Source: Gracilinanus agilis
Taxonomy: Eukaryota
Reading direction: 5' to 3'
Length of the DNA stretch: 64,000 bases
Assembly: GCF_016433145.1 (NCBI RefSeq)
Contig: NC_058132.1
Span: forward strand, 511,426,811-511,490,810
Within the stretch, counting starts at the first letter, position 1. Each line of letters opens with the position of its first letter. The translations under genes and the position numbers were made by a program. Positions 9,541 to 63,950 of this stretch are shown here, piece after piece. Under the pieces are notes generated by a model, which was given only the letters and a program-made list of their open reading frames with translations, was not told the origin of the DNA and did not search any database.

Positions 9541-10857
9541 ATGGATGCAAGAAACTTAATTGAAAATCTCAAGGGAAATCTGACTTGCTCTATCTGCCTG
9601 AGCTACTTCACAAACCCAGTGATTGTCAATTGTGGCCATCGCTTTTGCATAGTCTGTCTTCTGAGGTGAAGAAAAGAAGCAGATTTAACATTCAATTGTC
9701 CAGAATGCAGAGGAATCATCAAAGACAGAGATTTAGTGCCCAACAGGAATCCATAGAATCTATTACTGGCAAAATGGTCAGACCTCATTTACTTCAGAGC
9801 ATGATGGACCAGACTATATGTGGTCAACATGGGGAAAAAAAATTCTGTGAAGAAGACAAAATACTCCTCTGTGATTCCTGCTTATTAGCCCTAGAGCACA
9901 AGGATAACACAATCCTTCTCCTGGAAATGGTGGCTGACAAGTGCAAGGACAAGTTCCAGGAGACACTGAATAATATCTTACAGCAAAAAGAAGAATTTAA
10001 AATTGCATTAAGTAGAGAAGCATTCTGTAGGAAGGATATATCCTTTGAAATAGTCAGTTATTTCTCAATGAGAAAATGCATGACTTCTTTTGGAATGAAG
10101 AAGATTTTTATCTACAAAGACTGGATCAGCAATCCTGGAAAAATTGAGCAAAATGAAGCCAAACTGTCACACAACAAATACAAAATCTGCAAAGAATAAT
10201 ATTAGAAATAGAGGAGAAATAGGCCCTTGGAAATGTTCAAAGATATGAAAGGCACTTTAGAAAAGAATAAGGAGCTGCTACTTCAAGAACCAGAGATTGC
10301 TTCCCCTTCCTAGGCCACCAGCCCCATCATTGGCTTGAGAGAGATGCTCATGAGTTTCCAGAGTGATTTAAGTCTTGATTCCGAATCAGCCAATCCACAT
10401 CTCATCCTGTCTGAAGATCTGAAGAGTGTCAAGTGTGGGGATGTCCCACACGACCTACCTTCTTGATTATGTTTGTGCTGTATTGGGGGCTCAGACCTTC
10501 ACTTCAGGCAAACACTACTGGAAAGTAAAGATAGGAGATAAAGCAAAAAGGGAACTAGTCATCTGTAAAGATTCAATCAGGAGAAAAGGGAAACTCTCCT
10601 CATCATCTCAGGGTGTATGGACCATTGTAAGCTTCAGATCTGGAAATCATTTTTTCCTCTAGAATTCACATGATTATATTTATCTGAGCCAGCCCATAGA
10701 CAAAGTAGGAATTTTTCTGGATTATGACAAGGGATATATTGCCTTTAATGATGTCATAGATGGGTCCCTAATCTCTAGTGTCTCATACTAAATCTTTGAA
10801 GGCCCTCTTCACCCTTTCTCTTCTCCTTGTAGAGCTATCAATGATGTTAATTAGTAA
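9541..10857 (+). pseudogene. TRIM (RING/B-box/CC/SPRY) pseudogene, paralogue of the array genes
   Basis: Starts MDARNLIENLKGNLTCSICLSYFTNPVIVNCGHRFCIVCLLR* (TGA at codon 43); frameshifts and deletions follow; B-box and SPRY (GAQTFTSGKHYW) remnants. Confidence 0.95.
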
Positions 10858-13909: not shown

Positions 13910-13920
13910 AGTAAGACTTT

Positions 13921-14137
13921 GGGGGCAGTTGGGTGGCTCAGTGGATTGAGAGTCAGGCCTAGAAATGGGAGGCTCTAGGCTCAAATCTGTCCTCAGACAC
14001 TTTCTAGTTGTGTGAATCGGAGCAAGTCACTTAACACCCATTAAATAGCCCTTACCATTCTTCTGCCTTGGAACCAATGCACAGTATTGATACTAAGATG
14101 GAAAGTAAAGGTTTAAAAATAAAATAAAATGAAAAAA
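13921..14137 (+). mobile_element. Marsupial tRNA-derived SINE
   Basis: Full SINE with A-rich tail; same insertion site and 3' flank as the SINE at 26189. Confidence 0.9.
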
Positions 14138-15572: not shown

Positions 15573-15681
15573 CCTTAAAGGATTCAAACAAATTGACCTT
15601 TAGAACTGCTTATGATTAGTCTTTCCTTAAAGGATTCAAACAAATTGACCTTTAGAACTGCTTATGATTAGTCTTTCCTTA
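15573..15681. repeat. 52-bp perfect tandem duplication (about 2.1 copies)
   Basis: ccttaaaggattcaaacaaattgacctttagaactgcttatgattagtcttt at 15573 and 15625. Confidence 0.95.
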
Positions 15682-16776
15682 CCTCTGTATGTTTCTCATG
15701 AATAAAAATTTTGATAGAGTTTGTAGCTTTTTCTCCAGAGTGGTTGAATATCTTGAGTTCATTAAATACTCATTTTATACCTGTTATAATTATGGTTCTC
15801 TTTTCTTGATGTTATTCTTGGTTATGAGCCCAGTCCTTTCATTCTACAAAATGCTGTGTTACATGTCCTTCACTCTATGAATGTTGTGGCTGTTAAGTCT
15901 TGTATTATTCTGACTGTAGAGCCACAGTGGTTAAGTTTGTTTTTCTTGTTGCTTTGTAATATTTTCTATTTAACCTGGGAGCTATGTAACTTAGCAAAAA
16001 TGTTCCTGTGCATTTTCATCTTTTGGCTCTTTGAGGTGGTGATTGGTGGATTCCTTCCATTTCTATTTTACCCTGTGATTTTAGAATTTTGGAGCAACTT
16101 TCTTGGATGATTTCTTGGAGTAAAATGCTTAAGCCCCTTTAATCATGACTTGCTGAGAGTCCAAGTATTTTTATAATGTTTCATTCTTAATCTATTTGTC
16201 AGGTCAATTGTTTTTATGTTTAAATGTTTCATATTCTCTTCTAATTATTTGATTCTTTTGATTTTGTTTATTATTTCTTGTTGTCTTAGGAAGTCATTAG
16301 TTTCCTCTTGTCCAATTCTAGTTCTTAATAAATTATTGTCTTCCATGAGTTTCTGGATATATTTTCCATTCAAGTGATCTTCCTTTCATAATTTTCTTAT
16401 TTTTTTTTCCAAATTCTAACTGGATCTCTTTCATTTGGTTTTTAAAGTATTTTTCAAGCTCTTTCACAAACTATTTTGGAGCATCTTACCATTTATTTTA
16501 TTCCTTTACTCTTTTTGAAGTAAGTATTTTTACTTCACTATCCTCTGAGCTTGAGCCCAGATCTTCTCTGTCCTCATAGTAGCTTTCAATATCAGGGATC
16601 TTTCTCCTTTGCTTTCTCATATTTTTTATTTTTTAATTTTAAGGGCAAGGCCAATAGACATAATAATTATTTTTTTTGGTTGTTGTTTTTCTTGCTGGAG
16701 TTATAGGATTCCTGATATATTGAGATATATTACTTCAGGTTTCAGGATGTGTATGTCTGTGTCTGTTTGAGAGTAT

Positions 16777-16778
<2 letters not shown>

Positions 16779-16824
<46 letters not shown>
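16779..16824. repeat. (GT)23 microsatellite
   Basis: Direct reading. Confidence 0.95.
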
Positions 16825-16829
<5 letters not shown>

Positions 16830-16927
16830 TTTGGACTTACTGAGTTATTGCAGCTTTTAGAGTCCTAGTTCAGATATACTCCTGGTACCCCATTCAAACC
16901 CCAATCAATACTTGACCTCAGGTGTAC

Positions 16928-17601
16928 TGTTGTTGAAGATTAGATTAGTTAGTAATTAAGAATTAAGGTGTATCTAGCAGGAAGGAGCTGGAGCTGGGAA
17001 TTCTAAGATGGAATGAAGGAGCAGGAAGAAGTGACTTGGGCTCTGAGGGACTCCATTAGGGGTTAGCACAAACTGTGGTTAGCCCTGGGAGAACTCAGAG
17101 TAAAAGGACATCCTGCATCCCGATTTTCCCTGGGATCCTGTGTGGTGGTGGCATCTAGCAAAGAGGTCAAGATCTTCAGTGCTGTACCAAGGGAAGGGGA
17201 GAAGTTTGAGATCTGGTGGACAGCGTCTTAAGCAAACCCTCCCTATTTGGTACCTGAGACTACCTTGGCTCTTGGCATCCAGAGATCATCGGTGGATTGC
17301 AGTGAGAACCCCAAAGCCACATCAGCCCTTAGCTGTGCTCAAGCCTGGCAGGACCAGGTCTGAGACAGTCACCCAGAGACTCCATTACAGCTCCTTGGGC
17401 CCTGTCTACACTAAGTTAGTTTAGAAATAATTCCTCCCCTTTCCTTGTGGGTTTTGTCATTAGGTTTTAAGGGTTTAGAGTAGACATCCCTATCCCACCT
17501 TTTAGTTGTTCATAATTAAAACCAGGTATAACCTGTTACCTTGCCTGTTGGATTCAAAGCCTCTGGCCCAGGATGACAGTTGATCAACTGTCCCTTTGAC
17601 A
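16928..17601 (+). mobile_element. Probable solo LTR
   Basis: TG...GACA termini, ATTAAA near 17516, LTR-like composition; TSD not clear. Confidence 0.5.
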
Positions 17602-18229
17602 GTTAGGAGCAGCTTGACTGTTCTGGTCTCCATGTCCAAGTCTAGTCTCTCATAAACCCCAGTGTGTGTACTCACAAATCACTTAGTTATATTATAATAT
17701 CTCTGGTGTCTCCATTACCCTTACTTATCATTTTCTACAGTACCAACCATAACCCTTGGGCAGAGCTGCCACTGAAACTACAAGCAGACAGCTGATCTTC
17801 CCCTGTGGCAACCACCAGAGGGTCCACTCTCATGGGAGAGACCATAGCTGATGGTGCCATAGACCCTCAACACTCATATTCACTGATGTGTGCTATTTCC
17901 TAAACTTCCACTCCTACTGCCATGGCATAAGATAGAGCAAGTGTCTAGTCCACATTTCTCTAAACTCTAAAGTCTCTAGTTAGTTTTCAGTGAAGCTTGA
18001 GTTCTTGCCCTTAGGGCGTGGTGATAATAGATTCTGTGATGTCCACTCCTTTGGACACCAGCTGTGGGGGAGGGAGGGATCTCTGGAGCTCAGGTTGCAG
18101 ACACAGATACTTTGTCTGCAGATTCCAGTGGCATCCTTGGGGATACAAGATGTGGGGCTCAGCAAACAAAGTGAGATTGCTAATCCTGTTCTCTGGGGTT
18201 ACCTTGTTCATTCCACTAAGATATGATCA

Positions 18230-19230
18230 AAATGGATACATGAACTAGACATTAAAAGATATGATAAATAATATAGAAGAATAGGGAGCATTTTACTTAT
18301 TAGATGGATGGATAAGAAAGGAACTGATGAGCCAAAGAGATGAAAAGCAATATTAAAAATAAAATGGACAATTCTGAGTACATCAAATTGAAAACTTTTG
18401 AATCAGTAAAACAAATTTTGTAAAGATTAGAAGGAAAACAGAAAATGGGGTAGGAAATTTTATAGATAGCCCCTCAGAGAAAGCCTTCATATCTGAAATA
18501 TATTGAGAGCTGTACCAAATTTATGAGAATAAGAGCAATACCCCAATTGATACTTGAATAGGAACAAACAATTTTGGATGAAAACATCAAAACCATATTC
18601 AGGTATAAGAAAAAATGCTCTAACAAACTACTGGCTAGAGAACTACCAACAAAAACAGTTCTGAGATATCACTTCACACACACACCAGACTGGCTAAAAT
18701 GAAAAAAAGGGCAAAATGACCAATGTTGGAAGGGATGTAGGAAACAATGGGGCCACAAATGCACAGTCAGGGCATCTCAGAAATGATCCAACCATATTGG
18801 AGAGCAATTTGGAATTAAACTCAGAAAGGTATAAAGCTCTGTATAGCCCTGTTTCCCAAAGAGATTAGCTTAAAAGAAAAAGAACTCATGAGTTCCAAAA
18901 CATTTATAACATCTCTCTTTATGGTAGCCAAGAATTAGAAACTGAGGGGATGCCCATCATTTGGAGAATGGTTAAAAACAATGGTGGTGTATATTATTGG
19001 GATGGAATAATCCTGCCCCATGAGAAAAGATGAGCAGTCTAATTAGGGGAAAAAATGGAAAGGATTATGAACATACAGGATAATGAATAGTGAAATGAGC
19101 ATAACCAAGAGAGTATAATATACAGTGAAAGAAATAATACTGGAAGATTAACTTGTGAATGTTACTTTCAGAGAGTGAACTGAAAGGTGAAAACATGAAG
19201 CCTTTAATTTCTATGAACATATTGGTCTGC
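18230..19230 (+). mobile_element. L1 ORF2 3' fragment
   Basis: aaatggatacatgaactagacattaaa (KWIHELDIK) and downstream ORF2 C-terminal motifs; paralogous to 27900-28950. Confidence 0.8.
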
Positions 19231-19268
19231 CAACTGTGATGTGGGGAGGGTGGTCAGGGGTTTGGACT

Positions 19269-20100
19269 TGGAAGGATGATATTAGAAAATAAGTATTGTT
19301 TTATTAGTTTAAAGATAAGAAGTAGAGAAGCTGGCTTGGAGTTTCAAATAGAGCTGAGAGATTTGGAGAGCTGAGAGAATTGGAGTTTCGAATAGAGCTG
19401 AGAGAGAGCGTTAATTTCAACTGGTGCAGTTATAACCATTATTTCTATGACAGTTACACTCTCTGGGTGTGGCATTCCAGGAGTGGGCTTTTGGAAGTCG
19501 ACAGAGCCACATGCAGCTGCTTTCTCTCTCAGGGCTGGAGAAGGTAACATCTTTGCCTCTCTCTATCTCTGTCTGAGGGAAAGACTTGAAGGAGGGAAGC
19601 GTTTTCTTTTCCAACTTGGGAAACACTATTCATTTATCTGTTACTGCCTATAGACTGGTTAAACTGTGAAAAGACCAAACGAAACCTGATCTTTGGTTTG
19701 GACTCTGAATCTGTTAAGGCTCGGAGTCTTAATTTGATTCTTGTGGAGACTCAATTAGCTAGCCTTGGTTATCTTTATAACTTAAAGGTGAAGTTAAGAG
19801 TTAGAGTGGTTATGTTTATTTAGAATAGTATAAATTTGGTTAGATAGATCAGGGAGGATTAGTGTAGCCTGTGAACCACAGGAGAAGCAGCTCCTTGTGG
19901 GACCTGGGAGTTTATTTGGGTGGAGTTAGAATCCCTTAGAATTAGAAATCCTTTTCCTCATATATATTTAAATAAAAAGTTTATTTTCTATAACAAGAGT
20001 CTTTAAGTGTTTCTGGTGCCTGGCCCTGAAGGGAAGTTCATCTTTGAGCTTCACATCACTTACCACTGAAGATATCATCTATCAAAAGTATCTAGAATCA
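19269..20100 (+). mobile_element. ERV LTR upstream of TRIM gene A
   Basis: LTR-like with internal gagctgagaga repeats and AATAAA near 19972; followed by gag-like sequence; absent at the paralogous site near 28960. Confidence 0.6.
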
Positions 20101-20559
20101 ATTTTCATCCTTTATTTTCTTGTTCTTTGTCCTTATTTGTGTGCTTGCCTATATTATTTTTACAGTTTGTCGAGCCACAAAGGATGAAGAACCTAAAAAG
20201 TCTGATTTTAAGGGTCCAACTGTCAACTTGGGTGGTTGGAACCATTATCTCAGCAGGGGGGTCTGTTGAGGTAGCTAGAGCTGAAAGTTTCATTGTGAGC
20301 TGTAGTAACAGTGAGCTGAACTCTAGCTTGCTAAAAACTCATCTCCCAGTCAACTTGATACAAAGACTCTGCAGTCTCAGAAAACCTGATGAATTAGCTA
20401 CATAAAATCACCATGGAATTTTTTCTGTTATCTATGAATTCTCTCATTTTTAATATTATACCAGGATATTTACAGAATTTACTTGCCTATGACTTCTTAA
20501 TGCCACTACTCTCATTGACACTGTTACAACTAATTTCTTATGTCCCTGTGCTACTATTG

Positions 20560-21410
20560 TTTTTCATGTGCTTTTACATGATGATCAAATCTTTGGCAGT
20601 CGTGTTTAAACATTTAAAAGCAAGCATCAAACAAGATACTGCAAAAAATGATCTAATGTTAAAAGTGAAGTAACTAGAGACTAAACTAGATAAAATGCAA
20701 CTCAATATGAAGATTTCTCAAGGCTAAAGGGACAATTGCAGAAACTAAAGAATATGAAGCAACTAAATTAGAGAGTGCAACTAAATTAGATAAACCAACT
20801 AAATTAGAAATGGAAACTGAAGCATTAGAAAGCAAACCAGCTCATATGTTCCCTCTAAGACAGGTACCCATAGTAAACCCAGAACATGGTATACAGAAGC
20901 TCATAAGCCACAAAAGGTTTTCACAAACTGATATTGACAATTTTAAGAAAAATACTCCAAAATATGAAGAAGAACCAGTGGGAGTTGTAAGGCAATTCAA
21001 GTGCTTAATTAAGCTTTACAACCCTTCTTATTTGGACTTTGACATCCTTATGGATGAATTATTGACAAAAAGAGACAAACAGCAGATTTAGATGACACTA
21101 ATAATAACCTTCTAATTGCTGATTGGCCAACTGAGGACCCTGGTTGGGAAGTTAACTCTGTTTTGGGGTACAGAAATTTAACTACAGCCAGGGAGGCAAT
21201 AATTGAAACTATGAGACAAAATTCCAGATGTCCAGGAACCTGATCTAAATTTGAGCACCTAAAGAAGGAAGTGGGAAAGACTCCCTCCACTTTCCTCGAT
21301 AAAATTATTGACTATGTAGAAAAATGGATTGGGTTGGATATTTTAACAGGTGAAAATGTAAATCACATTCACAGGCAGTTTGTGAAAAATTGCATGTTTC
21401 GCACTTGCAT
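20560..21410 (+). pseudogene. ERV gag fragment (coiled-coil plus capsid)
   Basis: MFPLRQVP..RFSQTDIDNFKKNTPKYEEEP..YNPSYLDFDILM..WPTEDPGW..PSTFLDKI..HRQFVKN resembles class I capsid; stops and frameshifts present. Confidence 0.8.
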
Positions 21411-21718
21411 TTGTGGAAACAATTTTGAACTTTATTTTCTAGTTCTTTGTCCTTATTTGTGAATTTTCAAGCCCATTATAGTAATTTCCAAAAAAAAAAA
21501 GTTGAAAACTCAGTTCTTTTACAGAGACAAGAGGCAGTGTGACCAACACAGGAGTTCTCAGCTTTCCAGAGAGGAGTAAGGAGAAGAGCTCAAATAATGA
21601 AGGTCCAAGAAAAGGCAGGCTAAACTGGGGATCTTTGGTCATAGTAATAAGAAGAAAAGGAGGTTTGGTTTTTTTTTTTCCCCCAAGAGATGGTAATAAT
21701 GAGTCACGGAATAAGAAG

Positions 21719-21827: not shown

Positions 21828-21942
21828 AGACTACCACAACTGGGTCCTGGTATCTTTGGCTGCCAGATCCCAAGGGGCAAAGGCTGCCATTATCTCTCCT
21901 GGGAGGAATATCTGAGAAGGAAGGAATCAGAAGCCTGGGAGC

Positions 21943-23352
21943 ATGGATCCAAGAGATTTACTGGAAAACCTCAAGGCAGATCTGACTTGCTCTATCTGCC
22001 TGGGCTACTTCACAGACCCAGTGACTGTCAGTTGTGGCCATAGCTTTTGCACAGTCTGCCTTCTGAGGTGCAGGGGAGAAGCAGAGTCAACATTCCACTG
22101 CCCAGAATGCAGAGGAATCATCGAAGAAGATGATGTGTTGCCTAATAGGAATTTGCAGACTATGTCTGTCACTGGCAAAAGGCTCAGACCTCATCTGCTT
22201 CAGAGCATTGTGGACCTGTCTGTGTGTCATAAACATGGGGAGAAAGAGAAGCTCTTCTGTGAAGAAGACCAGAGACTTCTCTGTGGTTCCTGTTCATTAT
22301 CCCCAGGGCACAAGGACCACAGAGTCCTTCCCCTGCAAATGGCTGCTGACAAGTGCAGGGACAAGATCAAGCACACCCTGAATAACTTACAACGAAAAAA
22401 AGAAGAATTTAATGTTGCCTTGGACAGAGCGGCCAGGAGAGAGGCACTCTGTGACAAGGCTATACACTCTTTGAAACAATCTTTTATTTCAGAATACAGG
22501 AAAGTACATGAATTCTTATGGGAGGAAGAAGAGCTCTATCTACAAAGACTAGACCAGCAATACACAGACATCTTGGCAAAACTGGAGCTCAACAAGACCA
22601 AACTGTCTCAACAGATTGAAAATCTGGAAAGAATGCAATTAGAAGTAGAGGACAATTTGGAGAAGGGGCCCTTGGAAATGCTCCAAGATGTGAAAGGCAC
22701 TTTGGAAAGGCATGAGGAGCTGCTACTTCAAGAACCAGAGGTTATTTCCCTTGCCTGGGCCACCAGCCCCATCACTGGCTTGAGAGAGATGCTCATGAGA
22801 TTCCAGAGTGACATCAGTCTTGATCCTGAATCAGCCCATCCACATCTCATCCTGTCTGAAGATCTGAAGAGTGTCAAGTATGGAGATGTCCCACGGGACC
22901 TGCCTGACAACCAGCAAAGGTTCGATAGTGCTCCTGCTGTACTGGGGGACCAGACCTTCACTTCAGGCAAACACTATTGGGAGGTGAAAGTAGGAAATAA
23001 AACAGCTTGGGAAGTGGGAATCTGTAAAGATCCGGTCAGGAGAAAGGGACAAGTCTCCTCATTATCTAAGGATGCATGGACCCTCGTCAGTCTGGGATCT
23101 CGATATCATTGCTTCCTCTGGAATTGTAAATATGGCATCCATAGGAGCGAGCCTATAGACAAAGTAGGCATTTTCCTCGATTATGATAAAAGACATATAG
23201 CATTTTATGATGCCATAGACGGATCCTTAATTTCTAGTTTCTCAGACATGGTCTTTGAAGGGCCTCTTCGCCCTTACTTTTCTCCTTGCTGTCCTAATGG
23301 AGAAAGTACTCAAGGGTCAATTATGCTAATTGATGTGGGAGATTCTCACTGA
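21943..23352 (+). CDS. TRIM E3 ligase, gene A (RING, B-box2, CC, PRY/SPRY; TRIM60/75-like), intronless CDS, 469 aa
   Basis: Intact C3HC4 RING (CSIC..CGHSFC..C..CPEC), B-box2 (CHKH..FC..D..LLCGSC..H..H) and PRY/SPRY (LDPESAHPHL, GKHYWEV, VGIFLDYD, GPLRPYF). Confidence 0.97.
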   Translation: MDPRDLLENLKADLTCSICLGYFTDPVTVSCGHSFCTVCLLRCRGEAESTFHCPECRGIIEEDDVLPNRNLQTMSVTGKRLRPHLLQSIVDLSVCHKHGEKEKLFCEEDQRLLCGSCSLSPGHKDHRVLPLQMAADKCRDKIKHTLNNLQRKKEEFNVALDRAARREALCDKAIHSLKQSFISEYRKVHEFLWEEEELYLQRLDQQYTDILAKLELNKTKLSQQIENLERMQLEVEDNLEKGPLEMLQDVKGTLERHEELLLQEPEVISLAWATSPITGLREMLMRFQSDISLDPESAHPHLILSEDLKSVKYGDVPRDLPDNQQRFDSAPAVLGDQTFTSGKHYWEVKVGNKTAWEVGICKDPVRRKGQVSSLSKDAWTLVSLGSRYHCFLWNCKYGIHRSEPIDKVGIFLDYDKRHIAFYDAIDGSLISSFSDMVFEGPLRPYFSPCCPNGESTQGSIMLIDVGDSH

Positions 23353-23456
23353 GGAGTGAATGACAATGACTTGAAAGTGACTTTCTCTTCATTTCAACTT
23401 GTGTTAAAATGGACAACGGTAATTGTGTAAAATTGTTAAACCCTATAGAGAATAAA

Positions 23457-23900
23457 TCTGAACAAATTTTGGATATAATTGTATGAAATACTTTTGTGCC
23501 ATAACAAATTACTGAAGATAATGATTAAAAAAAACTGGAAAATTTTGTATAAAGTTCAGGAAAGTGAAGTGAGCAGAACTAAGAGAATACTGCACAGAAT
23601 GACATTTAATATACCATGAAAAGCTATTGTCAATATTACAAATGCTCAAGTACAACTCCAAAGGACTCATGATGAAGAAACGAATTTTACTGCCAAAGGA
23701 GAAACCCAGTGGGTCTGAATGCAGTTTGAAACACACCATTCTTCACTTTACTACCCCAATGAATTCTTCTTTATCTTGTAAACAGTAAGTTTCTTTTTTT
23801 CACAACATGATGAACATATATTTATGAAATATATATTTATGCATCCTATATTATATTACCTGTCTTCTTGGAGAAGGGTGGTAGAGAGGTGTATTAAAAG
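23457..23900 (+). mobile_element. L1 3' fragment just downstream of the gene (repeated at +8042 x3; older homologue at 55600-56050)
   Basis: ctgaacaaattttgg...gaaagtgaagtgagcagaact resembles the L1 ORF2 C-terminus and 3' UTR. Confidence 0.7.
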
Positions 23901-26188
23901 AACGAGATAAAGATTTTTGGACAAAACTCATTTGTGAATTTTTTCCCTTGGATAAAAGGGTTTATAATTATTTATTACATATTTATAACAAATCTTGTAT
24001 TATTACTGTTATAAATAAAAATAAAAAAGTGTTAGTTAAAAAATAATACAGTTTATTTTGTTTACTTGGAGCAGAAGAGCAAAGAAGGAAGCAAAGGAGC
24101 AGGAGTGAGTAGGAGAGAAGAAGGAGGGGGAGGAGAGATGAAGAGGGAAGAGTAGAGAAGAAGGAGGGGGTTAGGGGAGACAGAAAAGAAATAGGTGAGA
24201 AGGACTGAGGAGAGAAAAAAAGTTGCAAAAATTTTCAAGCACAGAAGTATGAAGAGAGAGATGAAAAAATGCTAAATGAATAAATAAATATTCATTTCAA
24301 TCGATGTTGAAATTGTCAATAAAGTTGAGCTTGATCATCAAAACCAAATAAAATAAAGTATTTAATTTATATTTGATAATTTTGAAAATGGGAGTTTTTT
24401 TTCTAATTAACATTATGATGATCCACAAACATTTAATTTGCAGATCAGGTATAAAGGGAGGCTGAAAAAAACATGAATGAAGGTGGGGGAAAGGGAGGTA
24501 AAAACGTTTTAAAAATAGAGACTGAGGAAGAGGGAGATGAAAGAATGCTGAATGAATGAACAAATGAATGAATGAGGGAATGATTCCTTTCAATGACCTC
24601 CTTGGGAGATTGGTATGGAAAAGTGATGTTTCTGAGTGAGATACAACACAAAATGAGGATCATAGCTGCCTCAAGGGACTTCTACCGGATCAGGACAGAG
24701 AAGATTTCTAAAGAAATAAATATATTATCAAAAAGTATATTAAATAAGAATCACAAAAGATAAGGGAAGAGTAGGTAACTGAGGCAAGATATTTTATGAA
24801 ATAAACTTTATTACTACTTTCTGTTATGGTGGCTTCTCCTTTTCAATCTTCCCCTCCATCTTTTCAGAGAGCTCTGACATCTGACATCATAGGAGACATT
24901 TCACTGTCACTATATCTCTAATGAAAAAACAGGTATTTTCTACACATTCTCCATTGGCTAGAAAGCCTAAAAGACACTCATCTTTGTTTTGAAGTTCCTG
25001 GATGTGAACAACATTGTGAATGACTAGACACATTATTGTGAATAAGAAGGGGAAGGGAGGGGAGGGGAGAACTCTATCCCTTTATAGAGACTAGAAGCAC
25101 TAAAGGGCTTAAGAATTCTCGGATTTAGAAAAAGGACTAAAGGAAAGAGTTTAAAGGGTGAAATTACAAAAAAAAAAAAAAGGGTAACATAAAATAAATT
25201 AAAAAACCTTTTTTTCTGCTACAACTCTGAGGAAAGTGCTAGCCTTATCTTTGATGAGTAGGATATCAGAGAAGAAAGAAATAAGAATTAAATTTCTCTT
25301 TAAAGAAAGTTAATTTTTAAAAGATTTTTTCATTCATATAATTAGTAACTACCACCACCATAAAAAACATTTAAATAAAAGAATGGATGAAAAATTATAT
25401 GCAAAAGCACAATTTCTACATTGTTCACAATTTGTCAAAATATGTAAATTATATGTGTTAATATAAACATCTGTGTTTGAGTTCCCTTTAGATTTGTTTT
25501 ACTTTGATACTTTTTTCTCTTGGCTTTGTAGCTCTTTGGTTCTTAATGTAACCATCGTATTATTATTAATCTTTATTCTTCTCTTTTCATCTCTTCATAT
25601 ATTTTCCTTATTTTCTTTATATTTCCAATATTTGTCATTTCTAATAAAATAATAGAATCTATTACATTAAAATATCACAATCTATTCAGCCATTTCTCCC
25701 AATCATTGCAACTGTGTTATCCCTAGTTATTTTGTCCTTACAAACAAAGCTTCCATAAACATTTTTATACATGCACAATTTTTTAGCTTCTCAATAATTC
25801 CCTTAAGGCCTAATCCAGGTAATGGGATCTCTAATGAGCATGAGCAACTTTACAGCTCTTAGTGTATATTTCCATCTTGTTTTCTAAAAAACAACTTACA
25901 GTTGATATAGCAATGTAATATTAGGTATGGTTCCACATGTTCCTATACCCATTTAATTTGATCAATTTAACCTGTCTTATTCTCAGTTAATATGCATCCC
26001 CAGGGCCATATTTAGCTAGATTGGTCCTTGGGCAGAAGGTACAATCTGTTTCCAGATCCATACTCTTTCCAAAACCAAGTGTTTTCTAGCTTGGTCATAC
26101 CTAGTAGAACATTTTTTTCCAATGCCACAATCCCTCAGAAGTACAAGATTACCTCCATTGTATGTTGAGTGTTGAAGTAAGAATTTTA

Positions 26189-28950: not shown

Positions 28951-29758
28951 GGGGCTTAGACACTTGAGGATAGGTTTCATTAAGTAGATGTGAAGGAAAG
29001 TAAGTAAATATATAAGAGATTTATGAATTCATTTATTAGCAAAATTATTTTGCACGTGGAAATGTATGTTCTTTTTGGTTTTGTAAAATTTGGAATAAAA
29101 ATTTGATGGCCCTGAGTAAGACACCAGAAAAAATGAGGACACTAGAAGCCTAAAGGAACTTCTACTGAATTAGAAAATTTATCTAAAGAAATAATTGTAT
29201 TATGAAAAATTATATGAAATAAGACCAACAGATCAATAGATGGTAGGGAATAGATAAGATATTTTATAAAATGAAATTTTATTGCTACCTTCTGTTTTCA
29301 TATCTTTTTTCCCAATTTAGAACTTCCTTTGAATCTTTTTAGACAACTATCACATCAAAGAAGCAATTTTAAAAAATATTAATGCTGTTTCTATACCTAT
29401 AATTAAAAAGGTGATAATTTCCATGCAATCCCCACTGGCTAGAAAGATGAAAGTGCAAGAATGGTTTCCTCTAAACTGCCAATCTGGGAACACCAATGTG
29501 AATCTTCAGGTCCATCATTGATGGTTTTTTTTTAAAAAAAGGAAAATTTCAGAACACTGTTCTTTTGCAGAGACAAGAAGCAGTGACAAACATAGGAGTT
29601 CTTAGCTTTGGAGAGAGGGAGTAAAGGGAAAAGCTCAAAGAATGAAGGTGCAAAAAAAGGCAGACTAAACTGGGGATCTTTGTTAATAGTAATAAGAAGA
29701 AAAGGGTTTGTTTGGTTTTTCCCCAAGAGGTGGCAATGGTGAATTGCTGGATAAGAAG

Positions 29759-29868
29759 AAAGGTGAGAAGTCAGCCCTAAAGCAGAGGCTGAAGCACTAT
29801 CAAAACATGAGTTCTCACCTTTTGTGGGTGGAGTCAAGGGAGGAGCTACCAAAGACAGACATATAAAA
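29759..29868 (+). promoter_or_regulatory. Putative B-type promoter (also 37801, 45843, 53885)
   Basis: TATAAAA at 29862, about 120 bp before the ATG; gggtggag; 14/15 inverted repeat. Confidence 0.5.
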
Positions 29869-29984
29869 AGACACCTCACAACTGGGTCCTGGTGTCTTTG
29901 GCTGCCAGATCCCAAGGGAGAAAGGCAGGCATTATCTCTCCTGGAAGGAATATCTGAGAAGGAAGGAATCAGAAGCCTGGGAGC

Positions 29985-31394
29985 ATGGATCCAAGAGATT
30001 TGCTGGAAAACCTCAAGACAGATCTGACTTGCTCTATCTGCCTGGGCTACTTCACAGACCCAGTGACTGTCAGTTGTGGCCATAGCTTTTGCACAGTCTG
30101 CCTTCTGAGGTGCAGGGGAGAAGCAGAGTCAACATTCCACTGCCCAGAATGCAGAGGAATCATCGAAGAAGATGATGTGTTGCCTAATAGGAATTTGCAG
30201 ACTGTGTCTGTCACTGGCAAAAGGCTCAGACCTCATCTGCTTCAGAGCATTGTGGACCTGTCTGTGTGTCATAAACATGGGGAGAAAGAGAAGCTCTTCT
30301 GTGAAGAAGACCAGAGACTTCTCTGTGGTTCCTGTTCATTATCCCCAGGGCACAAGGACCACAGAGTCCTTCCCCTGAAAATGGCTGCTGACAAGTGCAG
30401 GGACAAGATCAAGCACACCCTGAATAACTTACAACGAAAAAAAGAAGAATTTAATGTTGCCTTGGACAGAGCGGCCAGGAGAGAGGCACTCTGTGACAAG
30501 GCTATACACTCTTTGAAACAATCTTTTATTTCAGAATACAGGAAAGTACATGAATTCTTATGGGAGGAAGAAGAGCTCTATCTACAAAGACTAGACCAGC
30601 AATACACAGACATCTTGGCAAAACTGGAGCTCAACAAGACCAAACTGTCTCAACAGATTGAAAATCTGGAAAGAATGCAATTAGAAGTAGAGGACAATTT
30701 GGAGAAGGGGCCCTTGGAAATGCTCCAAGATGTGAAAGGCACTTTGGAAAGGCATGAGGAGCTGCTACTTCAAGAACCAGAGGTTATTTCCCTTGCCTGG
30801 GCCACCAGCCCCATCACTGGCTTGAGAGAGATGCTCATGAGATTCCAGAGTGACATCAGTCTTGATCCTGAATCAGCCCATCCACATCTCATCCTGTCTG
30901 AAGATCTGAAGAGTGTCAAGTATGGAGATGTCCCACGGGACCTGCCTGACAACCAGCAAAGGTTCGATAGTGCTCCTGCTGTACTGGGGGACCAGACCTT
31001 CACTTCAGGCAAACACTATTGGGAGGTGAAAGTAGGAAATAAAACAGCTTGGGAAGTGGGAATCTGTAAAGATCCGGTCAGGAGAAAGGGACAAGTCTCC
31101 TCATTATCTAAGGATGCATGGACCCTCGTCAGTCTGGGATCTCGATATCATTGCTTCCTCTGGAATTGTAAATATGGCATCCATAGGAGCGAGCCTATAG
31201 ACAAAGTAGGCATTTTCCTCGATTATGATAAAAGACATATAGCATTTTATGATGCCATAGACGGATCCTTAATTTCTAGTTTCTCAGACATGGTCTTTGA
31301 AGGGCCTCTTCGCCCTTACTTTTCTCCTTGCTGTCCTAATGGAGAAAGTACTCAAGGGTCAATTATGCTAATTGATGTGGGAGATTCTCACTGA
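29985..31394 (+). CDS. Chimeric TRIM copy 1 (B N-terminus, A SPRY), 469 aa
   Basis: Carries T12/V74/K132 like gene B; SPRY identical to gene A. Confidence 0.95.
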   Translation: MDPRDLLENLKTDLTCSICLGYFTDPVTVSCGHSFCTVCLLRCRGEAESTFHCPECRGIIEEDDVLPNRNLQTVSVTGKRLRPHLLQSIVDLSVCHKHGEKEKLFCEEDQRLLCGSCSLSPGHKDHRVLPLKMAADKCRDKIKHTLNNLQRKKEEFNVALDRAARREALCDKAIHSLKQSFISEYRKVHEFLWEEEELYLQRLDQQYTDILAKLELNKTKLSQQIENLERMQLEVEDNLEKGPLEMLQDVKGTLERHEELLLQEPEVISLAWATSPITGLREMLMRFQSDISLDPESAHPHLILSEDLKSVKYGDVPRDLPDNQQRFDSAPAVLGDQTFTSGKHYWEVKVGNKTAWEVGICKDPVRRKGQVSSLSKDAWTLVSLGSRYHCFLWNCKYGIHRSEPIDKVGIFLDYDKRHIAFYDAIDGSLISSFSDMVFEGPLRPYFSPCCPNGESTQGSIMLIDVGDSH

Positions 31395-38026: not shown

Positions 38027-39436
38027 ATGGATCCAAGAGATTTGCTGGAAAACCTCAAGACAGATCTGACTTGCTCTATCTGCCTGGGCTACTTCACAGA
38101 CCCAGTGACTGTCAGTTGTGGCCATAGCTTTTGCACAGTCTGCCTTCTGAGGTGCAGGGGAGAAGCAGAGTCAACATTCCACTGCCCAGAATGCAGAGGA
38201 ATCATCGAAGAAGATGATGTGTTGCCTAATAGGAATTTGCAGACTGTGTCTGTCACTGGCAAAAGGCTCAGACCTCATCTGCTTCAGAGCATTGTGGACC
38301 TGTCTGTGTGTCATAAACATGGGGAGAAAGAGAAGCTCTTCTGTGAAGAAGACCAGAGACTTCTCTGTGGTTCCTGTTCATTATCCCCAGGGCACAAGGA
38401 CCACAGAGTCCTTCCCCTGAAAATGGCTGCTGACAAGTGCAGGGACAAGATCAAGCACACCCTGAATAACTTACAACGAAAAAAAGAAGAATTTAATGTT
38501 GCCTTGGACAGAGCGGCCAGGAGAGAGGCACTCTGTGACAAGGCTATACACTCTTTGAAACAATCTTTTATTTCAGAATACAGGAAAGTACATGAATTCT
38601 TATGGGAGGAAGAAGAGCTCTATCTACAAAGACTAGACCAGCAATACACAGACATCTTGGCAAAACTGGAGCTCAACAAGACCAAACTGTCTCAACAGAT
38701 TGAAAATCTGGAAAGAATGCAATTAGAAGTAGAGGACAATTTGGAGAAGGGGCCCTTGGAAATGCTCCAAGATGTGAAAGGCACTTTGGAAAGGCATGAG
38801 GAGCTGCTACTTCAAGAACCAGAGGTTATTTCCCTTGCCTGGGCCACCAGCCCCATCACTGGCTTGAGAGAGATGCTCATGAGATTCCAGAGTGACATCA
38901 GTCTTGATCCTGAATCAGCCCATCCACATCTCATCCTGTCTGAAGATCTGAAGAGTGTCAAGTATGGAGATGTCCCACGGGACCTGCCTGACAACCAGCA
39001 AAGGTTCGATAGTGCTCCTGCTGTACTGGGGGACCAGACCTTCACTTCAGGCAAACACTATTGGGAGGTGAAAGTAGGAAATAAAACAGCTTGGGAAGTG
39101 GGAATCTGTAAAGATCCGGTCAGGAGAAAGGGACAAGTCTCCTCATTATCTAAGGATGCATGGACCCTCGTCAGTCTGGGATCTCGATATCATTGCTTCC
39201 TCTGGAATTGTAAATATGGCATCCATAGGAGCGAGCCTATAGACAAAGTAGGCATTTTCCTCGATTATGATAAAAGACATATAGCATTTTATGATGCCAT
39301 AGACGGATCCTTAATTTCTAGTTTCTCAGACATGGTCTTTGAAGGGCCTCTTCGCCCTTACTTTTCTCCTTGCTGTCCTAATGGAGAAAGTACTCAAGGG
39401 TCAATTATGCTAATTGATGTGGGAGATTCTCACTGA
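38027..39436 (+). CDS. Chimeric TRIM copy 2, 469 aa
   Basis: Translation identical to 29985..31394. Confidence 0.93.
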   Translation: MDPRDLLENLKTDLTCSICLGYFTDPVTVSCGHSFCTVCLLRCRGEAESTFHCPECRGIIEEDDVLPNRNLQTVSVTGKRLRPHLLQSIVDLSVCHKHGEKEKLFCEEDQRLLCGSCSLSPGHKDHRVLPLKMAADKCRDKIKHTLNNLQRKKEEFNVALDRAARREALCDKAIHSLKQSFISEYRKVHEFLWEEEELYLQRLDQQYTDILAKLELNKTKLSQQIENLERMQLEVEDNLEKGPLEMLQDVKGTLERHEELLLQEPEVISLAWATSPITGLREMLMRFQSDISLDPESAHPHLILSEDLKSVKYGDVPRDLPDNQQRFDSAPAVLGDQTFTSGKHYWEVKVGNKTAWEVGICKDPVRRKGQVSSLSKDAWTLVSLGSRYHCFLWNCKYGIHRSEPIDKVGIFLDYDKRHIAFYDAIDGSLISSFSDMVFEGPLRPYFSPCCPNGESTQGSIMLIDVGDSH

Positions 39437-46068: not shown

Positions 46069-47478
46069 ATGGATCCAAGAGATTTGCTGGAAAACCTCAA
46101 GACAGATCTGACTTGCTCTATCTGCCTGGGCTACTTCACAGACCCAGTGACTGTCAGTTGTGGCCATAGCTTTTGCACAGTCTGCCTTCTGAGGTGCAGG
46201 GGAGAAGCAGAGTCAACATTCCACTGCCCAGAATGCAGAGGAATCATCGAAGAAGATGATGTGTTGCCTAATAGGAATTTGCAGACTGTGTCTGTCACTG
46301 GCAAAAGGCTCAGACCTCATCTGCTTCAGAGCATTGTGGACCTGTCTGTGTGTCATAAACATGGGGAGAAAGAGAAGCTCTTCTGTGAAGAAGACCAGAG
46401 ACTTCTCTGTGGTTCCTGTTCATTATCCCCAGGGCACAAGGACCACAGAGTCCTTCCCCTGAAAATGGCTGCTGACAAGTGCAGGGACAAGATCAAGCAC
46501 ACCCTGAATAACTTACAACGAAAAAAAGAAGAATTTAATGTTGCCTTGGACAGAGCGGCCAGGAGAGAGGCACTCTGTGACAAGGCTATACACTCTTTGA
46601 AACAATCTTTTATTTCAGAATACAGGAAAGTACATGAATTCTTATGGGAGGAAGAAGAGCTCTATCTACAAAGACTAGACCAGCAATACACAGACATCTT
46701 GGCAAAACTGGAGCTCAACAAGACCAAACTGTCTCAACAGATTGAAAATCTGGAAAGAATGCAATTAGAAGTAGAGGACAATTTGGAGAAGGGGCCCTTG
46801 GAAATGCTCCAAGATGTGAAAGGCACTTTGGAAAGGCATGAGGAGCTGCTACTTCAAGAACCAGAGGTTATTTCCCTTGCCTGGGCCACCAGCCCCATCA
46901 CTGGCTTGAGAGAGATGCTCATGAGATTCCAGAGTGACATCAGTCTTGATCCTGAATCAGCCCATCCACATCTCATCCTGTCTGAAGATCTGAAGAGTGT
47001 CAAGTATGGAGATGTCCCACGGGACCTGCCTGACAACCAGCAAAGGTTCGATAGTGCTCCTGCTGTACTGGGGGACCAGACCTTCACTTCAGGCAAACAC
47101 TATTGGGAGGTGAAAGTAGGAAATAAAACAGCTTGGGAAGTGGGAATCTGTAAAGATCCGGTCAGGAGAAAGGGACAAGTCTCCTCATTATCTAAGGATG
47201 CATGGACCCTCGTCAGTCTGGGATCTCGATATCATTGCTTCCTCTGGAATTGTAAATATGGCATCCATAGGAGCGAGCCTATAGACAAAGTAGGCATTTT
47301 CCTCGATTATGATAAAAGACATATAGCATTTTATGATGCCATAGACGGATCCTTAATTTCTAGTTTCTCAGACATGGTCTTTGAAGGGCCTCTTCGCCCT
47401 TACTTTTCTCCTTGCTGTCCTAATGGAGAAAGTACTCAAGGGTCAATTATGCTAATTGATGTGGGAGATTCTCACTGA
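46069..47478 (+). CDS. Chimeric TRIM copy 3, 469 aa
   Basis: Translation identical to 29985..31394. Confidence 0.93.
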   Translation: MDPRDLLENLKTDLTCSICLGYFTDPVTVSCGHSFCTVCLLRCRGEAESTFHCPECRGIIEEDDVLPNRNLQTVSVTGKRLRPHLLQSIVDLSVCHKHGEKEKLFCEEDQRLLCGSCSLSPGHKDHRVLPLKMAADKCRDKIKHTLNNLQRKKEEFNVALDRAARREALCDKAIHSLKQSFISEYRKVHEFLWEEEELYLQRLDQQYTDILAKLELNKTKLSQQIENLERMQLEVEDNLEKGPLEMLQDVKGTLERHEELLLQEPEVISLAWATSPITGLREMLMRFQSDISLDPESAHPHLILSEDLKSVKYGDVPRDLPDNQQRFDSAPAVLGDQTFTSGKHYWEVKVGNKTAWEVGICKDPVRRKGQVSSLSKDAWTLVSLGSRYHCFLWNCKYGIHRSEPIDKVGIFLDYDKRHIAFYDAIDGSLISSFSDMVFEGPLRPYFSPCCPNGESTQGSIMLIDVGDSH

Positions 47479-53400: not shown

Positions 53401-54110
53401 AATTTTATTGCTACCTTCTGTTTTCATATCTTTTTTCCCAATTTAGAACTTCCTTTGAATCTTTTTAGACAACTATCACATCAAAGAAGCAATTTTAAAA
53501 AATATTAATGCTGTTTCTATACCTATAATTAAAAAGGTGATAATTTCCATGCAATCCCCACTGGCTAGAAAGATGAAAGTGCAAGAATGGTTTCCTCTAA
53601 ACTGCCAATCTGGGAACACCAATGTGAATCTTCAGGTCCATCATTGATGGTTTTTTTTTAAAAAAAGGAAAATTTCAGAACACTGTTCTTTTGCAGAGAC
53701 AAGAAGCAGTGACAAACATAGGAGTTCTTAGCTTTGGAGAGAGGGAGTAAAGGGAAAAGCTCAAAGAATGAAGGTGCAAAAAAAGGCAGACTAAACTGGG
53801 GATCTTTGTTAATAGTAATAAGAAGAAAAGGGTTTGTTTGGTTTTTCCCCAAGAGGTGGCAATGGTGAATTGCTGGATAAGAAGAAAGGTGAGAAGTCAG
53901 CCCTAAAGCAGAGGCTGAAGCACTATCAAAACATGAGTTCTCACCTTTTGTGGGTGGAGTCAAGGGAGGAGCTACCAAAGACAGACATATAAAAAGACAC
54001 CTCACAACTGGGTCCTGGTGTCTTTGGCTGCCAGATCCCAAGGGAGAAAGGCAGGCATTATCTCTCCTGGAAGGAATATCTGAGAAGGAAGGAATCAGAA
54101 GCCTGGGAGC

Positions 54111-55520
54111 ATGGATCCAAGAGATTTGCTGGAAAACCTCAAGACAGATCTGACTTGCTCTATCTGCCTGGGCTACTTCACAGACCCAGTGACTGTCAGT
54201 TGTGGCCATAGCTTTTGCACAGTCTGCCTTCTGAGGTGCAGGGGAGAAGCAGAGTCAACATTCCACTGCCCAGAATGCAGAGGAATCATCGAAGAAGATG
54301 ATGTGTTGCCTAATAGGAATTTGCAGACTGTGTCTGTCACTGGCAAAAGGCTCAGACCTCATCTGCTTCAGAGCATTGTGGACCTGTCTGTGTGTCATAA
54401 ACATGGGGAGAAAGAGAAGCTCTTCTGTGAAGAAGACCAGAGACTTCTCTGTGGTTCCTGTTCATTATCCCCAGGGCACAAGGACCACAGAGTCCTTCCC
54501 CTGAAAATGGCTGCTGACAAGTGCAGGGACAAGATCAAGCACACCCTGAATAACTTACAACGAAAAAAAGAAGAATTTAATGTTGCCTTGGACAGAGCGG
54601 CCAGGAGAGAGGCACTCTGTGACAAGGCTATACACTCTTTGAAACAATCTTTTATTTCAGAATACAGGAAAGTACATGAATTCTTATGGGAGGAAGAAGA
54701 GCTCTATCTACAAAGACTAGACCAGCAATACACAGACATCTTGGCAAAACTGGAGCTCAACAAGACCAAACTGTCTCAACAGATTGAAAATCTGGAAAGA
54801 ATGCAATTAGAAGTAGAGGACAATTTGGAGAAGGGGCCCTTGGAAATGCTCCAAGATGTGAAAGGCACTTTGGAAAGGCATGAGGAGCTGCTACTTCAAG
54901 AACCAGAGGTTATTTCCCTTGCCTGGGCCACCAGCCCCATCACTGGCTTGAGAGAGATGCTCATGAAATTCCAGAGGGATATCAGTCTTGATCCTGATTC
55001 AGCCCATCCACATCTCATCCTGTCTGAAGATCTGAAGAGTGTCAAGTATGGAGATGTCCCACAGGAGGTTCCTGACAACCAGGAAAGGTTTGATTATGCT
55101 CTTGCTGTACTGGGGGCCCAAAGCTTCACTTCAGGTAAACACTATTGGGAGGTTAAAGTAGGAGATAAGACAGTGTGGAAACTGGGAGTCTGTAAAGATT
55201 CAATCAGGAGAAAAGGTCAACCATCCCCATTATGTGAGGAAGTATGGTACCTAATAAGCCTCAGATATGGAAAGAATTACTTTCTCTTGAATTCTAAAGG
55301 TGGAATTAATCAGAGCCAGCCTATAAAGAAAGTGGGAATTTTCCTGGATTATGATAAAAGACATGTCGCATTTTATGATGCCATAGAGGGATCCTTACTT
55401 TGTAGTTTCTCAGAAATGACCTTTGAAGGGTCTCTTCGTCCTTACTTCTCTCTTTGCTGTCAGAAAGAAGAAAGTACTCCTGTGTCAATTATGATAACTA
55501 ATATGGGAGATTCTCAGTGA
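54111..55520 (+). CDS. TRIM E3 ligase, gene B with divergent PRY/SPRY, 469 aa
   Basis: Same as the middle copies to codon 285, then about 57 of 184 residues differ with no indels or stops. Confidence 0.97.
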   Translation: MDPRDLLENLKTDLTCSICLGYFTDPVTVSCGHSFCTVCLLRCRGEAESTFHCPECRGIIEEDDVLPNRNLQTVSVTGKRLRPHLLQSIVDLSVCHKHGEKEKLFCEEDQRLLCGSCSLSPGHKDHRVLPLKMAADKCRDKIKHTLNNLQRKKEEFNVALDRAARREALCDKAIHSLKQSFISEYRKVHEFLWEEEELYLQRLDQQYTDILAKLELNKTKLSQQIENLERMQLEVEDNLEKGPLEMLQDVKGTLERHEELLLQEPEVISLAWATSPITGLREMLMKFQRDISLDPDSAHPHLILSEDLKSVKYGDVPQEVPDNQERFDYALAVLGAQSFTSGKHYWEVKVGDKTVWKLGVCKDSIRRKGQPSPLCEEVWYLISLRYGKNYFLLNSKGGINQSQPIKKVGIFLDYDKRHVAFYDAIEGSLLCSFSEMTFEGSLRPYFSLCCQKEESTPVSIMITNMGDSQ

Positions 55521-56239
55521 GAAGTGAATGAAAATGACCTTCTTTTCATTTAAACTCCTGCTAAAATGGATATTATAATTAAGTAAAATTATCAAACCAT
55601 ATAAGAATAGTATGAACAACTTGTGGTATGTGATTGTATGAAATACTGTTGTGCCATAAGAAATGAGAATGAAGATGATCAAAAACGATACAGAACCATG
55701 TAAAGATTTGTATAAATGCAAAGTGAAGAGAGCTGAACCAGGAGAATATTGTACATAATAACATCCAATGAACAACTGAAAATGACTTAAATATTATCAA
55801 TATGACAAATGTTCTAGGACAATTCTAAGGGACTTGTGGTGAAAAGGAGTTTTCACTGCTACAGAAGAAACTCTTGGGGTCTGCATATTTAAATATACCA
55901 TTCTTTACTTCATTACCTCAATGAATTCTTCTTTAGAGTGTAAGCAATAAATGTCTTTTTTTACAACATGATGAATAAGGCAATATGTACTTCATAATTT
56001 ATACAACCTATATCATATTGCTTGTCTTCTTGGGGAAGGGTGGTAGAGAGGTGGATTAAAAGAACAAGATAAAGATTATTGGACATAGCTAAGGTGATAA
56101 TACGTTTCTCTTGGATAAGCATATTTGTTACTATTTATTACATATTTATAAAAAATCTTGTATTATATTATTGTTATGTTATCTATAAACATTAAACATT
56201 GTTAATTTTAAAAGAATACAGTTTAATTTTTTCATTGTT

Positions 56240-56405
56240 GGAACAGAAGAAGGAGGAAGAAAGAGGCTAGGAGTGAGTGGGGGAGCAGAAGTAGGAGAAG
56301 GATGAGGGGAGGATGTGGAAGGAGAGGGAGAGGGAGAGGAGGAGGATTAGGAAAAGTAGGATGGGAGAGAATTTGAAGGAGAAGTAAGATAGGGAGGGAG
56401 AAGGA
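56240..56405 (+). repeat. GA-rich polypurine tract (homologue at 24070-24220 in each unit)
   Basis: Nearly pure A/G on the plus strand. Confidence 0.8.
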
Positions 56406-62720: not shown

Positions 62721-63520
62721 TTCCCAACTGTTACCATCTATTCCCCACTCCTGTATTTGTGAGTTTGGTGAGATTTTTAGTGTGTTACTTACTGTGTGTC
62801 AAGCAATGGCCCTTCATTCCTCCTTCATCCCTTTTCCCCCCTAGAAACCCATGTGTTTATTTACCTACTTCAGTCCTCAGCCAGAAGGGCCAGTAATGAG
62901 TAACTATGAGGCCTCCTCCAAGATGGAAGCTAGTCTCTTAGGAAACTATGAAAGTAGTCAGCCCTCTTCTCTCACCCAATGAAGTAGTCCAGGAGTCAGA
63001 ATCCAAGTTGATGCCAGGATCTAAGCCACAGTCTCTAGTAAAGTTGTCTTGAAGACTATCTCCAGGAGACACTCTCCATGAGATTCAACTTCACCAAACT
63101 GACTGCTCAGGGATATTGTGGCTTTTATGGTGGTTTCCTGTTTTAGCCCCTCTTCACAGGGGCCAATCAGTTTCCAAATTGTCTAGCACTGCCCAGGAGC
63201 AGTGTCTGTGGGACTGAGTTGTCACCTCTAGAGGTGTTAATTCTCTTCCTAGTATTCACATGTTTCTGAGCTGTCATTCAGTCTGGATTTGCATGTTACT
63301 GAGTTAGCACTGGGTTACAGTTTTCCTTTGGAGGTGAAAACTCCTGTAGTAAGAATTTCCCCTATTTTAGAGTTAAGTATGGGTGTATTCCCTTTTTTTG
63401 ATTAATTTAAAAGTAGACAAAGGAGAGTTAATCCTGTCCTCACAGTCTAGTGAGGTACTAATTAGGGGCATTTAAGTTATTGTTTCAGAATAGACAGAGA
63501 ACCAAGAATTTCCTTTCACA

Positions 63521-63950
63521 GGGGCCCAGACCTTCACTTCAGCCAAACACTATTGGGAAGTGGGAGTCTAAAGATTCAGTCAGGAGAAAAGGCTAAGTCT
63601 CCACATTATCTGAGGATGTACCGATCATAGTAAGCTTCAGATATGGAAATCATTGCTTTCTCTGGAATTCTCAAGATGGCCTTCATCTGTGCCAGCATAT
63701 AGAGAAAGTGGGTATTTTTCTGAATTATGATAAAGATATATAGCATTTTATGATGTCATAAATAGAACCTTAATTTCTAGTTTCTCAGACATAACCTTTG
63801 AAGGGCGGCCCCTTTGCCCTTACTTCTCTCTTTGCTGTCCTAATGGAGAAAGTACTCCTAGGTCACTCATCATATGCCCCAGGAGTAATCACTAGAAGGT
63901 TAGCAATTATGCTAATTAATATTGGAAATTCTCAGTCAGAAGTGAATGAC
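63521..63950 (+). pseudogene. SPRY-only TRIM remnant truncated by an LTR
   Basis: GAQTFTSAKHYWE, VGIFLNYDK, PYFSLCCPNGESTPRSLIICP with deletions and stops; begins directly after an LTR-like ...tttcaca; 3' flank homologous to gene A. Confidence 0.92.

Follow-up and report, generated by a model that had tools for sequence, protein, structure and literature searches.

Mosaic similarity between two TRIML1-like genes of Gracilinanus agilis: a near-identical N-terminal module, diverged PRY-SPRY domains, and an assembled tandem array

A cluster of TRIML1-like genes and its surroundings

The window (the whole 64-kb stretch of Gracilinanus agilis DNA analyzed here) contains five intact open reading frames (ORFs) of 469 amino acids on the plus strand, which start at positions 21943, 29985, 38027, 46069, and 54111 in the ORF list and are spaced by exactly 8,042 bp from start to start. 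RING, B-box, PRY, and SPRY domains were found in all five by Pfam. The first ORF, gene A1 (21943..23352), is the parental A gene and has its own upstream region and an A-type SPRY. The last, gene B (54111..55520), is an intact, intronless 469-amino-acid TRIML1-like TRIM gene with a unique SPRY, as described from the ORF, Pfam, AlphaFold2 (AF2), and Foldseek. The remaining three comprise chimeric copy 2 (29985..31394), in which a B-type promoter and N-terminus are joined to the A SPRY, and two further copies identical to it (38027-39436 and 46069-47478).

In both A and B, Pfam placed zf-C3HC4_4 at residues 16-56, zf-B_box at 93-131, PRY at 291-339, and SPRY at 343-451. The AF2 model of B (mean pLDDT, 77) contains the RING, the B-box, and a coiled-coil helix at residues 131-239, followed by two helices in the linker (243-261 and 280-285) and a beta-sandwich that starts near residue 291. 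In Foldseek, the model matched CC-B30.2 structures of TRIM72 and TRIM20 (E about 1e-20) and also the PRYSPRY folds of TRIM21 and TRIM11. Judged by these domain matches and the modeled fold, A and B are predicted to be class IV TRIM proteins, with a RING/B-box, a long coiled-coil plus L2 linker, and a C-terminal PRY-SPRY (B30.2) domain.

The nearest named relatives of these proteins are marsupial proteins called TRIML1 (64 to 77% identity in Monodelphis), while eutherian TRIML1 is about 44% identical. A partial third paralogue from the same genome, P0011, lies on an unplaced 6,041-bp contig of GCA_016433145.1. Its residues 1-88 are 100% identical to those of A1, including the A1-specific A12 and M74, and identity to A1 falls to 69% in the B-box. 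P0011 represents either a second domain-level mosaic boundary in this genome, between RING and B-box, or a short-read mis-join.

Upstream of the five genes, an older, frameshifted TRIML1-like pseudogene, psi0 (9541..10830, plus strand; about 78% nucleotide identity to A and B), runs through frames 1, 3, and 1 and ends at about residue 449. It is followed at 11015-21489 by an older copy of the spacer, 81 to 85% identical and with insertions, in which a 52-bp sequence is perfectly repeated in tandem (2.1 copies; 15573-15681). The presence of psi0 with an old spacer copy indicates that the gene-plus-spacer unit had already been duplicated long ago. Further upstream, an ORF at 2030-2494 encodes the C-terminal domain of a gammaretrovirus-type integrase (Pfam MLVIN_C; E, 9e-13) and is the remnant of an endogenous retrovirus. 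Toward the other end of the window, an isolated SPRY-like fragment (63497-63874, plus strand) has 35 to 42% amino acid identity to A/B with patches of about 81% nucleotide identity; it represents either another paralogue in decay or the final exon of a gene that continues beyond the window.

TATA-like boxes are found at 21821 in A1 (CATAAAAAG) and at 53988 in B (TATAAAAAG), about 122 nt before the ATG. The box is conserved between the two genes, and the near-identical tract described below begins about 80 nt 3′ of it. An antisense ORF of 183 amino acids (29532-30083, minus strand) overlies the 5′ end of the array genes and is repeated in each unit; it had no Pfam match and is probably spurious. 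The DUX4-type motif TAAYNNAATCA had no match within the 64-kb window.

A near-identical front and a diverged SPRY part in A1 and B

The preliminary description had reported that the two genes differ at only 4 nucleotides in the first 855 coding nucleotides and at about 57 of 184 residues from codon 286 onward. Both counts are exact for A1 and B. The four differences lie at coding nucleotides 18, 34, 220, and 394, and three of them are replacements (residues 12, 74, and 132); thus, all differences before the SPRY part fall within nucleotides 1 to 394. From +395 to +856 there are none, and the next is at coding nucleotide 857, in codon 286. The identity extends upstream of the coding sequence, as the 39 nt immediately 5′ of the ATG are the same in both genes. 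Farther upstream, 6 differences were found in the interval from -108 to -40 (at -91 to -40). This is the level of the flank, and the start of the core tract was therefore set at about -39. The core tract (-39 to +856, through codon 285) occupies 54072..54966 in B and 21904-22798 in A1, both on the plus strand, and has 4 differences in 895 nt (99.5% identity).

Both sides of this tract are clearly diverged. In a gapped A1/B alignment, identity was 82 to 89% from -452 to -54, 97 to 100% from -54 to +856, and 72 to 88% from there to about +2200, with no homology beyond either end of this range. Between -452 and -109, identity of the 5′ flank is 86%, and indels are present; for the 3′ flank, identity is about 77% as far as about +2200 (K, 0.279), in agreement with the earlier report of diverged 3′ flanks. 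The B-specific PRY-SPRY part with about 790 nt of 3′ flank (54967..56306, plus strand) is homologous to 22799-24137 of A at about 79% identity. A two-breakpoint maximum chi-square for A1 and B was 223, compared with at most 19.8 in 200 shuffles, placing the low-divergence block far beyond chance.

Both tract ends lie near module edges. One is 39 nt from the ATG, and the other is 5 codons ahead of the Pfam PRY start, just past the helix predicted by AF2 at residues 280-285. The 3′ edge sits in a patch that is 90 to 96% identical among A, B, and psi0, and can therefore be placed only to within some tens of nucleotides. A 64-bp exact run shared by the A and B SPRYs lies downstream, from +889 to +952.

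Silent sites were used to distinguish homogenization from constraint. By the Nei-Gojobori method, the A1/B N-terminal part has a dS of 0.006 (1 synonymous change in 180 sites) and a dN of 0.004, compared with a dS of 0.268 (26.5 changes in 118 synonymous sites), a dN of 0.168, and an omega of 0.63 in the SPRY part. In the noncoding flanks, K is 0.279 on the 3′ side and 0.154 on the 5′ side. The silent sites of the SPRY part have thus diverged like neutral flank, and it is the N-terminal part that is anomalous. A dS of 0.006 against 0.27, with flank K values of 0.15 to 0.28, indicates that the N-terminus was homogenized by recombination and not just conserved.

Taken by itself, the protein-level pattern would be compatible with purifying selection on the N-terminus alone or with recent duplication of the whole gene and rapid evolution of the SPRY thereafter. 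Both alternatives were rejected on the synonymous divergence and on the noncoding 3′ flank, which has diverged as much as the synonymous sites of the SPRY part, and we regard such an explanation as highly improbable. The preliminary description had also named N-terminal invariance across species as an observation that would speak against homogenization. The N-terminus is only 64 to 78% identical to Monodelphis paralogues (72 to 78% when the most distant, P0010, is left aside), so homogenization is not refuted on this ground. Similarly, psi0 is about 78% identical at the nucleotide level to both A and B and is equidistant from them in the N-terminal and SPRY halves.

Phylogenies of the two segments disagree. 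In the N-terminal tree, one clade unites the window genes with P0011 (100/99) and a second unites five Monodelphis genes (98/99), while in the SPRY tree the genes of the two species are interleaved. The approximately unbiased (AU) test rejected the clade of five Monodelphis genes on SPRY data (p, 0.00045) and, on the N-terminal data, it also rejected a grouping of A with P0004/P0007 (p about 1e-57). A and B as sister SPRYs were not rejected (p, 0.35), so topology leaves a split before the species split unproven. A bounded near-identical tract, homogenized silent and noncoding sites, and segment-discordant phylogenies are together the signature of partial interlocus conversion, and all three are present here. 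The A1/B mosaic and its statistics, the tree discordance, and the geometry of the array are thus what the analysis demonstrates in the assembly. Of the earlier proposal that gene conversion keeps the N-terminal module uniform, homogenization by nonreciprocal recombination therefore stands on dS, flanks, and trees; the maintained constant/variable design attached to it does not, as discussed below. GC content is 0.463 in the A/B N-terminus and 0.385 in that of psi0, compared with 0.41 to 0.45 and 0.40, respectively, in the SPRY parts. GC-biased conversion is only hinted at by these values, for which decay of the pseudogene is an alternative explanation.

The 8,042-bp array and the order of events

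Compared with itself at a shift of 8,042 bp, the sequence shows no mismatches from 22337 to 54966 (plus strand), corresponding to 4 full units plus 462 bp, or 4.06 units. Each unit consists of the rest of an A gene, about 6.5 kb of spacer, and a B-type promoter and N-terminus. The left junction lies at +394/395 of A1, and the right junction lies at +856/857 of B. Unit-to-unit comparison gave zero differences in 24.6 kb, an A14 run included. Copies 2 to 4 are identical to B from 0 to +856 and over the entire upstream region of about 7 kb, and they carry the B upstream region and N-terminus fused to the A SPRY and the A 3′ spacer. The diverged promoters of the preliminary description thus apply to A1 and B and do not apply to copies 2 to 4 and B. 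For copies 2 to 4 and B, the boundary at codon 286 is the duplication junction at the right end of the array. Only the A1/B comparison has two junctions, and so only A1/B calls for conversion.

The core tract (-39 to +856) doubles as the repeat underlying the array. The units lie head to tail and end in a common repeat (4 x 8,042 bp plus 462 bp), the arrangement associated with nonallelic homologous recombination (NAHR); a whole number of units plus the common tract is the geometry expected of unequal crossing-over between two direct repeats. From this arrangement we infer the array itself.

The explanation that best accounts for these observations overall, and which we consider probable, is that of old paralogues, a late conversion, and then an array formed by crossing-over; the order of events and conversion as the mechanism are what we infer. 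A and B would be old tandem paralogues of an intronless TRIML1-like TRIM family expanded in marsupials. Their duplication would be deep (K about 0.27 at synonymous and 3′-flank sites), as deep as the SPRY distances of A and B to Monodelphis paralogues. Much later, a nonreciprocal exchange (interlocus gene conversion, possibly repeated) would have overwritten about 0.9 kb, a stretch that starts about 39 nt ahead of the ATG, ends at codon 285, and spans the RING, B-box, coiled-coil, and L2 linker. The resulting near-perfect direct repeats, 8,042 bp apart, would then have been the substrate for unequal crossing-over, which would have given the 8,042-bp array of chimeras with a B promoter and N-terminus and an A SPRY. 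At the codon-286 boundary of B, the converted tract would have its 3′ limit and the array its right-hand end. If neutral rates of 1-3e-9 per site per year are assumed, the tract would be about 0.7 to 2 Myr old, the array units would be younger than about 20 to 60 kyr, and the A/B duplication would date back tens of Myr.

Under uniformity, the probability that all A1/B differences lie 5′ of +395 is 0.055 for the 4 in the coding sequence and 0.0015 for all 10; a single conversion event is therefore insufficient. The simplest account is an older conversion followed by crossovers of copy 1 with inner copies, and such later crossovers would explain the lack of A1 differences from +395 to +856. The reverse order would have an unequal A-by-B crossover occur first, in the conserved patch at about +817 to +916, and give rise to the chimera, with the A1 N-terminus converted afterward by array copies; the codon-286 boundary would then be a crossover junction and not a conversion limit. 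The junction does fall where A, B, and psi0 are most alike (90 to 96%), and the differences from A1 do show a 5′-to-3′ gradient. However, this order requires a crossover in DNA of about 80 to 90% identity and makes the four isolated differences single-site escapes from about 170 expected. In addition, comparison with psi0 makes the B type the derived state at nucleotides 18 and 34, so that these differences resemble new substitutions. We consider the reverse order unlikely.

How far the array can be trusted depends on the assembly, a product of Supernova v2.1.1 and GapCloser run on 2x100-bp stLFR linked reads, with a contig N50 of 57 kb (PMC8390783). Reads of this kind are unable to bridge a 462-bp perfect repeat or to count 8-kb units, so the 4:1 dosage, the chimeras, and the zero-difference identity are to be read as features of the assembly only. 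It is a substantial possibility, short of probable, that the shared tract was a repeat node in the assembly graph and that a loop of A SPRY, spacer, and B-type N-terminus was traversed too often. The chimeric copies and the 4:1 dosage would then be unreal and, in a stronger version, the B SPRY would be mis-joined to its N-terminus. Unrolling of a graph cycle would yield such perfectly identical units, with zero differences across 24.6 kb and through the A14 run. The chimeric protein, when looked up, was present in GCA_016433145.1 only and in no independent assembly; the A and B SPRYs have an exact 64-bp run in common; and P0011, a further partial paralogue, sits on an unplaced 6-kb contig. Against an artifact, the assembler retained the 4 differences of the A1 and B types and both distinct upstream regions, which indicates that two N-terminal variants were present in the reads. 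Further, collapse merges sequences that are about 99% identical and not those that are 80% identical, the B-specific differences at +857 to +888 directly adjoin the tract, and the 64-kb window is without gaps. The A1/B mosaic is more robust than the copy number of the array as the assembly separates two N-terminal variants, each with its own upstream region, and the tract is immediately followed by B-specific changes.

Pairing of A and B products and comparison with known systems

The preliminary description had seen in this arrangement a maintained design of constant region and variable head. On this reading of a selected modular design, selection would act against conversion of the SPRY while that of the RING/B-box/coiled-coil (RBCC) part is tolerated, and chains with A-SPRY and B-SPRY would join through their identical coiled-coils into bispecific dimers. 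Both tract ends are close to module edges, the coiled-coil of copies 2 to 4 is 100% identical to that of B, the upstream 7 kb is identical and makes co-expression likely, and the SPRY omega of 0.63 comes with a dense cluster of A/B replacements at residues 371-403. In Monodelphis, however, the N-terminus varies as much as the SPRY does: among eight paralogues, mean pairwise identity was 75.4% for residues 1-285 and 75.2% for residues 286-469, and the coiled-coil was the least conserved segment (68.8%). The difference between N-terminal and SPRY identity ranged from -11 to +15 points in Monodelphis pairs, compared with +30 for A1/B. Since the Monodelphis N-terminus is as variable as the PRY-SPRY, a constant RBCC is not a property of the family and the A/B case is a recent event. 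Nor was an omega above 1 seen for the SPRY overall (values above 1 occurred only at residues 441-469, with tiny counts), and the enrichment of A/B replacements in predicted loops was not significant (Fisher p, 0.15). The maintained design is thus unsupported, and we regard its selection as unlikely.

Heterodimers of A and B are a separate matter. The identical coiled-coils and promoters of copies 2 to 4 and B make co-expression and mixed pairing plausible from sequence, and A/B heterodimers may accordingly be envisaged. By simple arithmetic, random pairing at equal expression and at 4:1, itself the assembly count, would give 64% AA, 32% AB, and 4% BB dimers. Lamins A and C share the same dimerization domains and do not form heterodimers, which has been credited to cotranslational pairing on one mRNA (PMC12356879); identical coiled-coils are thus no guarantee of heterodimers. 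A fuller scheme of combinatorial recognition, with a homogenized RBCC, random pairing of SPRY heads, a chimera recently amplified under selection, and most B heads in bispecific dimers, seems unlikely. If both the array and the heterodimers were true, one could ask at this locus, as a natural experiment, whether paralogous TRIMs with identical coiled-coils mix.

The A/B case belongs to a known phenomenon; its mechanism is textbook, and its signature is that of ordinary partial conversion. The primate chromosome-11 TRIM cluster (TRIM43/48/49/51/64 type; Han et al. 2011, PMC3228819) likewise has young tandem and segmental duplicates, 100%-identical pairs, and partial conversion with an interdomain breakpoint. 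There, the breakpoint separates the RING from B-box2 and conversion was not regarded as extensive, whereas in the G. agilis pair the whole RBCC is homogenized, the genes are intronless, and the tract seeds an array. The zebrafish NLR-B30.2 genes (Howe et al., 10.1101/027151) and finTRIMs (van der Aa 2009, PMC2657112) are similar in that one module is converted and B30.2 evolves separately; in NLR-B30.2 genes, gene conversion is domain specific and B30.2 is on a separate track (10.1101/027151). Those systems comprise hundreds of multiexon genes with positive selection in B30.2 loops, in contrast with the one pair in G. agilis.

Hybrids of the opsin and RHD/RHCE type are chimeric gene arrays generated by NAHR. 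As in the present case, a direct repeat in two paralogues leads to unequal crossing-over, in-frame hybrids, and copy number change; no mechanistic difference was seen in G. agilis, where the copy number is the assembly count. The A/B pair is a clean and quantifiable case of module-limited concerted evolution in TRIMs, in which the converted tract would also serve as the substrate that creates and amplifies an in-frame hybrid ligase. Its most striking feature, the four perfect copies, may come from the assembly.

Paralogues called TRIML1 are numerous in each marsupial genome of the hit list, and eutherians have essentially one. Eutherian TRIML1 is of the same length as A and B and shares the RING-CC-PRY/SPRY organization at about 44% identity, but the eutherian hits were without a B-box Pfam match, which the marsupial proteins retain. 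The marsupial genes further differ in their uninterrupted coding sequence and tandem expansion. In opossum, TRIML1-like transcripts have been reported as confined to testis and ovary, and the tandem pair then known was suspected to be a possible assembly artifact (PMC6993854). In the literature found, marsupial TRIML1 is handled as about single copy, and an intronless TRIML1-like expansion is little described. In Monodelphis, the P0004 gene (1.4 kb) is uninterrupted and belongs to a same-strand tandem cluster, and both didelphid loci examined are intronless and tandem. The locus also points to a large intronless TRIML1-like expansion in marsupials.
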